Source: Oikopleura dioica (lineage: Eukaryota; Animalia; Chordata). From it: a stretch of DNA of 64,000 nt. Under the pieces are notes generated by a model. The model searched no databases and was not told the DNA's origin. It worked only from the letters and a program-made list of their open reading frames with translations. Location of the stretch: assembly GCA_907165135.1 (NCBI GenBank), contig OU015566.1:10106001-10170000 (forward strand), read 5' to 3'. The number at the start of each line of letters is the position of its first letter. Within the stretch, counting starts at the first letter, position 1. Below, in pieces: positions 26,906-28,363 of this stretch. The translations under genes were made by a program, and so were the position numbers.

Positions 26906-28363
26906 ATGGAGCTGGATCTCAATCAGGTTCAAGAAGCTCTCAAATTAGACAATAATGATGAGGATGCCTCGATGAGTGCCTACGAGACCCACCATGTGAA
27001 ATACGGCCTGTGGACAGTGCCACAGAGATACCGCGATTTAAAACAGCTCGGCTGTGGGGCTTACGCGCAAGTCTGCTCGGCTTTCGACCGGAAATACAAC
27101 AAAGTAAGCATCAGACTGTAAGCTTACGATGTCGAGCATTGATTTATTAGTGTGTGGCGATGAAAAAGCTGACAAGGCCATTGAAAACGGTTGATTATGC
27201 CCGCAGAGCCCTACGAGAGCTGAAATTAATGAAGCACTTTTGCCATGAGAATATAATTTCAATAATTGATGTCTTTACGCCACTTGCTTATGGACCAGAA
27301 GACATGGAAGAGGAAAGGTCCTTATTTATATTTTTACAAAAAATGATACGAAAAGATTCAAGTTTGAGTTTCAGGAGCTAATTGCCTCATTCAAATTAAT
27401 AATTTTCTCCAGGATTTTAATTGAAATAAAAAATGACCCAATCAAAGATATACTTCGTGGTGAAAAAAGCCGACGGAACCCTGGACCAAGCGATCAAAAC
27501 TGCAAATCAAAACAACACAAAGTTCGACGAGGAAACGATACAGTTCCTAGTTTACCAAATGGTGCGCGCTCTGAAGCATATCCACTCAGCCAATGTCATG
27601 CATCGTGACTTGAAACCGGACAATATTGGTGTGTTAGAGAAGGACGGCATAATTCAGATTCTCGATTTTGGGTAACCGCTTTGTATGAATTTTAGATTTG
27701 GATCCTTTCAGATTGGCGCGCCATGTAGATGATTATATGTCCGGCTATGTGATGGCTAGGTGGTACAGAGCACCAGAGATAATCCTGAGATGGATGCGCT
27801 ACAACGAAAAAGCGGACATCTGGAGCCTCGCATGCATCTTCTCGGAGATGATGACCGGCAAACCGCTCTTTCCGGTCGACTGTTGGCAAAAGCTCTTAGA
27901 TGAGATAATAAACCTGTGTGGGACGCCGAACGATAAGTTTATTGACAAAATAGAAGGCGAAAATATAAGGAAATGCATTCGTGGCTTCACAAAAGTAGAG
28001 AAGAAGGATTTAAGAATCATACACACTGGTTTCTCCGACCAAGTAAGCCCCCCTTTGAAGCCCGTTTTTCTATTCATGTTCTTTCAGGCAATAGACTTGA
28101 TCGAGAAAATGTTGAAAATTGACCCCGACGAACGAATTTCTGTAGAAGAAGCAATCAAGCACCCGTTCTTTGGGGACCTGCGCGATCCACCAAACGAGCC
28201 CACCGCCACTCCCTTCGTAGACAATTCAGAAGGCCACAATCTTACCATCGCTGATCTTCGCAATCAAATCTGGACGGAAATCCACACCTTTGAACCTCGA
28301 CCTCTTCAAAGCATTTACCCCGAAGATTTCTACTCATCCGATGACGAGGAAATAGAACAATAA
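26906..28363 (+). CDS. Divergent p38-like MAP kinase with an SGY activation loop
   Basis: [24 protein letters not shown] and [14 protein letters not shown]. One GA-AG intron (27313-27447). Confidence 0.88.

Follow-up and report, generated by a model that had tools for sequence, protein, structure and literature searches.

Paralogues of the p38 mitogen-activated protein kinases (MAPKs) with an odd version of the Thr-Gly-Tyr (TGY) dual motif are known from flies, nematodes and flatworms. One of them is Drosophila p38c, a lineage-specific copy in which the motif is changed to TDH, yet which is expressed and functional: it phosphorylates ATF2 in vitro and has functions in the gut (PMC4177744). 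In C. elegans three p38 genes (pmk-1, pmk-2, pmk-3) stand in tandem on one strand and form one operon, and only two of them are named as TGY kinases (PMC4335502). Here we describe g2, a five-exon protein kinase gene at positions 26906-28363 on the forward strand of a 64,000-nt stretch of the Oikopleura dioica genome (contig OU015566.1 of assembly GCA_907165135.1, positions 10,106,001 to 10,170,000; hereafter the window). It lies on the same strand as a canonical p38 gene, g1, which ends 555 nt upstream, and it encodes Ser-Gly-Tyr (SGY) where p38 kinases have TGY. We regard it, with somewhat better than even confidence, as a functional, lineage-restricted p38 paralogue, an old tandem duplicate that would have diverged fast under selection into a competent proline-directed kinase, dual-phosphorylated at SGY by a MAPK kinase (MAP2K) and altered in its docking surfaces. 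Thus, g2 adds to the known pattern of odd-motif p38 paralogues and does not stand for a novel type of system. New is the combination of a Ser acceptor, loss of the residue equivalent to Thr185 of p38alpha (T185) and remodelled docking, which was found in this animal's lineages only.

The vertebrate p38s, p38alpha (MAPK14) and MAPK11-13, are the best match of all g2 exons. The activation loop has the same length, the catalytic residues and the phosphate-binding arginines are the same, and so are the position of the common-docking (CD) segment and the L16 region. In contrast to vertebrate p38s, g2 has SGY for TGY, Ala for T185, a Gly loop of the form GxGxxA and extra N- and C-terminal tails; the hinge THLMGAD reads VKKADGT, the CD sequence DPDDEP reads DPPNEP or DPENEP in the two lineages described below, and PGTDHIDQL reads PVDCWQKLL. 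Identity to the vertebrate kinases is only ~40-45%. The gene is composed of the following parts.

26906-27103, forward strand: exon 1, with the N-terminal extension and the Gly loop GCGAYA (27050-27067), from the gene model.
27151-27312, forward strand, 3' end predicted: exon 2, with VAMKKL, its catalytic Lys at 27163-27165, and the alphaC Glu; best solved structures p38 beta and alpha, match to Pfam Pkinase.
27313-27447, forward strand: intron 2, probably GA..AG (exon AG, intron GAA), the best in-frame solution.
27448-27671, forward strand: exon 3, with the altered hinge VVKKADGT, HRD at 27601-27609 and the start of DFG at 27664; Pfam Pkinase 1.9e-15, best structures p38 delta, beta, gamma and alpha.
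27712-28042, forward strand: exon 4, with SGY at 27740-27748, Ala before RWY at 27755-27757 and the altered segment PVDCWQKLL.
28088-28363, forward strand: exon 5, with the CD site DPPNEP at 28184-28201, the L16 region and an acidic C-terminal tail.

An initial annotation of this DNA had singled out the signature residues of g2, and all of them are found as it described. SGY is encoded by TCC GGC TAT, the Thr before RWY is replaced by Ala (GCT), the Gly loop is GCGAYA, and the CD site is DPPNEP where the adjacent g1 has DPDDEP. The catalytic residues are intact: the Lys (AAA), the alphaC Glu (in RELKLM), HRD and DFG, the last encoded by 27664-27671 together with 27712. APE and the catalytic Asn are kept as well, and the full catalytic set is present in both lineages. 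Hence, none of the losses that define a pseudokinase (Lys, HRD Asp or DFG Asp) has occurred. From DFG to APE the alignment to g1 and p38alpha is free of gaps, with the short-loop spacing of p38. By this alignment g2 also retains the Arg residues in RRALRE, HRD, LARH and RWYR, which we take to be those that bind pThr and pTyr in p38alpha. What g2 lacks is the Thr-Gly-Tyr motif of p38s, from which Gly and Tyr remain, and their acidic common-docking sequence (D-x-D-D/E) with the ED site.

These changes belong to a larger set. In 20 p38 reference rows, with g1 among them, 103 columns show a conservation of 85% or more, and g2 departs from 21 of these, by changes such as T180S, T185A, G36A, D112T, G225V, D227C and Q231L (residue numbers are approximate, being transferred from a vertebrate p38alpha-like representative). 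In the hinge, the gatekeeper Thr is replaced by Val and HLMGAD by KKADGT. The ED region NEDCE reads LEKDG in the window and LENDG in the sister lineage, and the CD site is short of two acidic residues in the window (DPPNEP) and of one in the sister lineage (DPENEP). In 20 of the 21 changed columns the identical new residue is found in both g2 lineages, and the derived states themselves are therefore under constraint. A Ser as first acceptor and the lost Thr are rare but not unique: of the 143 nearest MAPK-like cluster representatives with a readable motif, nine carry Ser as the first acceptor and five are without Thr before RWY.

The second lineage is represented by a 12-kb contig (L001, from GCA_977009715.1), reached via an open reading frame (ORF) fragment, which is collinear with 23146-34305 of the window at 65-87% nucleotide identity and carries g1, g2 and the downstream PDZ/guanylate-kinase gene. 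Its g2 is intact, with five exons, GT-AG introns throughout and 396 aa; it encodes SGY (with TCT), VMARWY, GSGAYA and DPENEP, and the N-terminus of g2 is conserved in it. Across four sister-lineage contigs exon 4 is 90-91% identical, and the activation segment is invariant, with SGY and VMARWY. The initial annotation had asked for a check of the Ser codon. Two further DNA runs span the signature codons with no change among the variants listed, which is weak support; stronger support comes from the four contigs of the diverged sister lineage, which encode SGY with the synonymous TCT and in no case with ACx. The rates of non-synonymous (dN) and synonymous (dS) substitution and their ratio (omega), computed as were the alignment and the tree from joined coding sequences, are as follows.

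g1, window versus L001: dN 0.012-0.02, dS saturated (>1), omega ~0.01-0.02, protein identity 97%.
g2, window versus L001: dN 0.086-0.095, dS saturated (>1), omega 0.04-0.085, protein identity 86%.
g2, L001 versus L004 (a sister-lineage metagenome contig): dN 0.0053, dS 0.067, omega 0.079.

Between L001 and L004, 16 codons of g2 differ synonymously and 5 non-synonymously (binomial P 1.2e-6, assuming a rough neutral expectation of 3:1). g2 is under purifying selection. The initial annotation had named an unexpressed and neutrally evolving gene as the outcome that would speak against its proposal. Neutrality is contradicted by an omega far below 1, also in the comparison of window and L001; expression is seen for the sister-lineage orthologue only.

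Reads of two raw RNA runs are 88-93% identical to the window, and the letters of their loose ends match L001 exactly or nearly; we therefore assign both runs to the sister lineage. They cover exons 1 and 3 of g2, at a depth of ~21-24 over 27508-27653, comparable to g1, where exons 7 and 8 reach ~9-22. Over 26924-27069, in exon 1, the RNA reads LGSGAYAQ. It crosses introns 1 and 3, and in a joint 27668->27737, which has 28 orthologous letters in its middle, the 40-nt intron 3 is spliced out. Thus, the sister-lineage g2 orthologue is transcribed and spliced. The Ser codon in this RNA we infer from the match to L001.

In database searches, which were run exon by exon, Pfam Pkinase matches exons 2-5 of g2, exons 3 and 4 passing the curated cut-off alone, and for every exon the best solved structures are p38 isoforms; the C-lobe of exons 4 and 5 aligns to p38alpha 169-354 with E 6e-43. 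When 1.84 billion cluster representatives were searched exhaustively with a 221-aa open stretch (exon 4, intron 4 and exon 5), two ORF fragments from the orthologue were returned, at 88% and 82% identity, and all other matches were at 48% or below; past these fragments the nearest representatives are animal TGY p38s, and the search gave no full-length annotated g2 orthologue and none from another species. A word-based search of proteins up to 387 aa had one match, an ORF fragment of the orthologue. A scan of metagenome contigs yielded only more contigs of the same sister lineage, besides a fungal Hog1-like gene and a CDK. In the searches made, g2 was found only in this animal's lineages.

The phylogeny that the initial annotation had called for was built as a maximum-likelihood tree of 72 MAPKs. 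In this tree g2 (window and L001) sits on a long branch inside the animal TGY p38 clade, and the starred set of 31 rows contains both g1 and g2. Forcing g1 and g2 together improves the log-likelihood over that of the free tree by 1.15 units, and the forced tree is not rejected by the approximately unbiased (AU) test (p-AU 0.53). Over 347 residues g1 and g2 share 46% identity, and the stem branch is 0.93 for g2 versus 0.36 for g1, which makes the duplication an old one. The positions and phases of g2 introns 1, 3 and 4 (short GT-AG introns of 47, 40 and 45 nt) match those of g1 at NDA|SVAVKKL, DFG|LAR and xxx|AIDL, so that three of the four g2 introns are common to g1, which has seven. A local duplication long ago, with fast divergence after it, is plausible and the most economical history, given the tandem arrangement, the three shared intron positions and the AU result. 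The idea of a local duplicate in the initial annotation is thus plausible, on the same strand and with most introns shared, but the duplication is not a recent one.

The fourth intron, intron 2, is the difficult part of the gene model. In L001 its donor reads ...GAAATA|GTCG in phase 0; the window is one base shorter there, and with the homologous canonical GT at 27318 the exon ends in phase 2. Past the in-frame stop at 27427-27429 there is a single AG acceptor, 27446-27447, and it requires phase 0. A canonical GT-AG intron from 27318 is therefore out, since it shifts the frame and no AG between that stop and 27448 fits a phase-2 donor. An assembly error at the donor had been suspected, as the redundant copy of an upstream segment (see below) differs by 17 indels; it is excluded because an independent DNA-run contig over 26810-27407 is identical to the window. 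Five bases upstream of the GT lies an in-frame GA donor in the context AG|GAA. Introns of the GA-AG type are remarkably frequent in Oikopleura dioica, and their GA donor is reported to stand between AG on its upstream side and A on its downstream side (PMC7072748). Intron 2 is thus probably a GA-AG intron at 27313-27447, and with it g2 would encode a protein of 396 aa. The exon end at 27312 presupposes such an intron; alternative ends are 27315, 27317 and 27354. The last (a GA donor, AA|GAT) is in frame but disfavoured, as the 13-14 added residues are not conserved in L001 and the donor context is poorer. This GA donor at 27355 and the other in-frame option, GT..AA (27318-27446), would alter only 1-14 residues of a surface loop. 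Elsewhere the ~1.19 kb of coding sequence is free of stops and frameshifts, all five exons being open. Contigs of an independent DNA run also show a 1-nt deletion at 27463 in the A-run of exon 3 (one contig, depth 82 of 537), a 3-nt deletion at 27425 in intron 2 and a 7-nt insertion at 28364-28366, just past the stop codon; these variants may be alleles, the redundant copy or errors.

How might such a kinase work? On the favoured reading of g2 as an active, MAP2K-dependent paralogue, the copy that arose from the neighbouring canonical p38 and diverged quickly under continued selection would have stayed a catalytically competent, proline-directed kinase. A MAP2K would switch it on by phosphorylating both Ser205 and Tyr207 of SGY. 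Since the Tyr, the Gly and all phosphate-holding basic residues are kept, the dual-phosphorylation switch is probably still used, and Ser would be its first acceptor. The residue that follows DFG in MAP2Ks is beta-branched, which is associated with a preference for Thr, and PP2C-type phosphatases prefer pThr. The Ser may be a less efficient acceptor for Thr-preferring MAP2Ks and a less efficient site for PP2C-type phosphatases, and the kinetics of activation and inactivation would be changed. The Thr before RWY, T185 of p38alpha, bonds to the HRD Asp. In p38alpha the mutation T185G abolishes TAB1-induced autoactivation, while activation by MAP2K and substrate phosphorylation remain intact (PMC5809688). 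Since the T185G enzyme is active, the Ala of g2 predicts a kinase that depends on upstream kinases rather than a dead one; autoactivation in cis of the TAB1 type would be lost and the dependence would be strict. MAP2Ks, phosphatases and substrates are selected through the CD and ED sites, the hinge and the region near the DEF pocket. Changes in the CD site (DPPNEP/DPENEP), the ED site (LEKDG), the hinge (D112T) and between alphaF and alphaG (G225V, D227C, Q231L) would give g2 partners unlike those of g1. Beyond this, we consider it possible, though distinctly tentative, that g2 is a second, insulated p38 channel with a pSer-Gly-pTyr switch, kinetics of its own and private partners. Such a channel would be entered more slowly through Thr-preferring MAP2Ks, dephosphorylated more slowly by PP2C enzymes that prefer pThr, and incapable of self-activation, and its CD/ED groove and alphaF-alphaG/DEF-pocket region would have been remodelled together for a private set of partners.

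Several observations weigh against an active, MAP2K-dependent g2. The changes G36A, D112T and T185A could lower its activity; a search of the literature for a T180S mutant of p38, which would bear on the acceptance of Ser by MKK3/6-type kinases, found nothing; dN of g2 is ~5-8 times that of g1; in the lineage of the window, intron 2 needs a non-canonical donor; and an environmental haplotype carries an inverted-repeat element in exon 3, so that disrupted alleles circulate. One rival reading makes g2 a modulator of low activity, as suggested in the initial annotation, or an inactive one; it would be a scaffold or decoy in the shape of p38 for a MAP2K, a phosphatase or substrates, and its kinase activity would be of little importance. 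Near-invariant p38 positions are indeed changed (G225V, D227C and Q231L besides the three just named), the Thr before RWY is missing in just the five representatives of 143 counted above, and a p38-derived SGY gene on a Tara Oceans contig, without Gly loop, HRD and DFG, illustrates that p38 copies can drift so. Nevertheless, we hold this reading to be unlikely, because two lineages have kept every catalytic residue and phosphate-binding Arg under purifying selection. Active kinases, too, can have a third Gly-loop residue that is not Gly. Disfavour for the modulator comes further from the reported activity of p38alpha T185G (PMC5809688). The alternative that the initial annotation had placed beside it, rewired activation or specificity, is the best-supported reading, as 21 of the 103 conserved columns are changed while the catalytic and phosphate-holding residues are kept, although it is derived from sequence comparison.

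A rewired kinase could also be active without being switched by a p38 MAP2K, through another upstream kinase or through constitutive autophosphorylation as in atypical MAPKs. In line with this are the Ser acceptor, given the Thr preference of MAP2Ks, the loss of one or two acidic CD residues and the altered ED site, both sites being those that bind the MAP2K docking motif, and the finding that Drosophila p38c phosphorylated ATF2 in vitro without TGY (PMC4177744). However, the Tyr, the Gly spacer and all phosphate-reading residues are kept, as expected if the classical switch is still used, and loss of the T185 equivalent argues against autoactivation in cis (PMC5809688), so that we judge this alternative improbable as well. 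We think it quite improbable that the g2 of the window's lineage is a recently inactivated pseudogene, with the loss of one base at the exon 2 donor as the lesion. The GT that corresponds to the L001 donor does not share a frame with the sole AG acceptor, the donor sequence is confirmed by an independent DNA contig, and a transposon-disrupted allele is present in the sister lineage. Against a pseudogene speak the otherwise undamaged reading frame, the 20 of 21 derived residues still common to the sister lineage, and the in-frame GA donor in its AG|GAA context just upstream (PMC7072748). The disrupted allele is that of L004, where a 235-nt insertion (L004:1204-1438) lies inside exon 3; it has terminal inverted repeats of 19 nt, which are 95% complementary, its interior holds repeats rich in GCTCC, and a target duplication of 10 nt, CTCTGGATCA, accompanies it. 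Neither the near-identical haplotype L003 nor L001 has the insertion, and nothing in the window matches its terminal repeat. The insertion makes L004 either a null allele or the bearer of a newborn intron.

If g2 is active via SGY, it would be a natural case, tested by selection, of the exchange of a Thr acceptor for Ser, the loss of a self-activation residue and the remodelling of docking, and would serve the question of how acceptor identity and docking set the kinetics and the insulation of a pathway. If it is an insulated channel, it would be a natural experiment in which one MAPK module splits into two without cross-talk. There is also a practical point. Signalling by p38 is reported to play a part when growth of this animal is arrested in dense culture. 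Work on p38 in O. dioica used a phospho-TGY antibody and the inhibitor SB203580, and the paralogues were not separated (PMC3973624). Because the gatekeeper and hinge of g2 and its epitope differ, both reagents probably report mainly on g1.

Drosophila p38c adjoins p38a. Its TDH has lost the Tyr acceptor, whereas g2 keeps Ser and Tyr, and the two paralogues are of independent origin. The tandem, same-strand arrangement resembles the C. elegans pmk genes, although those form an operon and g1 and g2 are 555 nt apart. A 494-aa protein of the nematode Angiostrongylus costaricensis (VDM57773.1) consists of a TQY p38-like copy fused to part of an adjacent TGY copy; it is a gene-model error, yet it documents tandem p38 paralogues in this species. 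There the motif is changed at the middle residue; in g2 it is changed at the acceptor. The SLY MAPK of the cestode Mesocestoides corti (UniRef100_A0A5K3FH00) also has a Ser acceptor within the p38 clade, where a TGY protein from Sparganum is its sister. It differs by its Leu middle residue and by keeping the Thr (VVTRWY), and it is not a g2 orthologue. A compact p38-derived gene on a Tara Oceans metagenome scaffold (L002:879-2038) has SGY and VGFRWY, and its DPDDEP is intact. Its Gly loop is gone, LLD and QNL stand in place of HRD and DFG, and a short tandem repeat rich in proline is present; the gene resembles a pseudokinase and comes from a marine eukaryote. This gene was considered as a distant g2 orthologue and rejected, as it is nearer to g1 than to g2 and a degenerate kinase.

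The surroundings of g2 comprise the following features.

24258-26350, forward strand: g1, a canonical p38 with TGY and DPDDEP, 8 exons, 375 aa, GT-AG at every junction.
24258-24449, 24498-24752, 24809-24918, 24966-25047, 25098-25179, 25267-25433, 25619-25736 and 26229-26350, forward strand: the exons of g1.
59826-64000, forward strand, running past the window end: redundant copy of 20242-24429 that takes in the first 57 codons of g1 (4190 aligned columns at 99.6% identity, 0 mismatches, 17 single-base gaps).

Intron 7 of g1 (25737-26228, 492 nt) is unusually long for this genome, and an RNA joint 25734->26227 confirms it. From 28569 onwards (L001:5847-9359) follows a neighbour of the DLG type with PDZ, SH3 and guanylate-kinase domains. 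The order g1-g2-DLG is collinear in both lineages and is therefore conserved across a divergence at which synonymous sites are saturated. The redundant copy is directly preceded by a run of N (~59326-59825); it is probably a redundant contig behind a scaffold gap and not a biological duplication, and one of the two copies carries indel errors.

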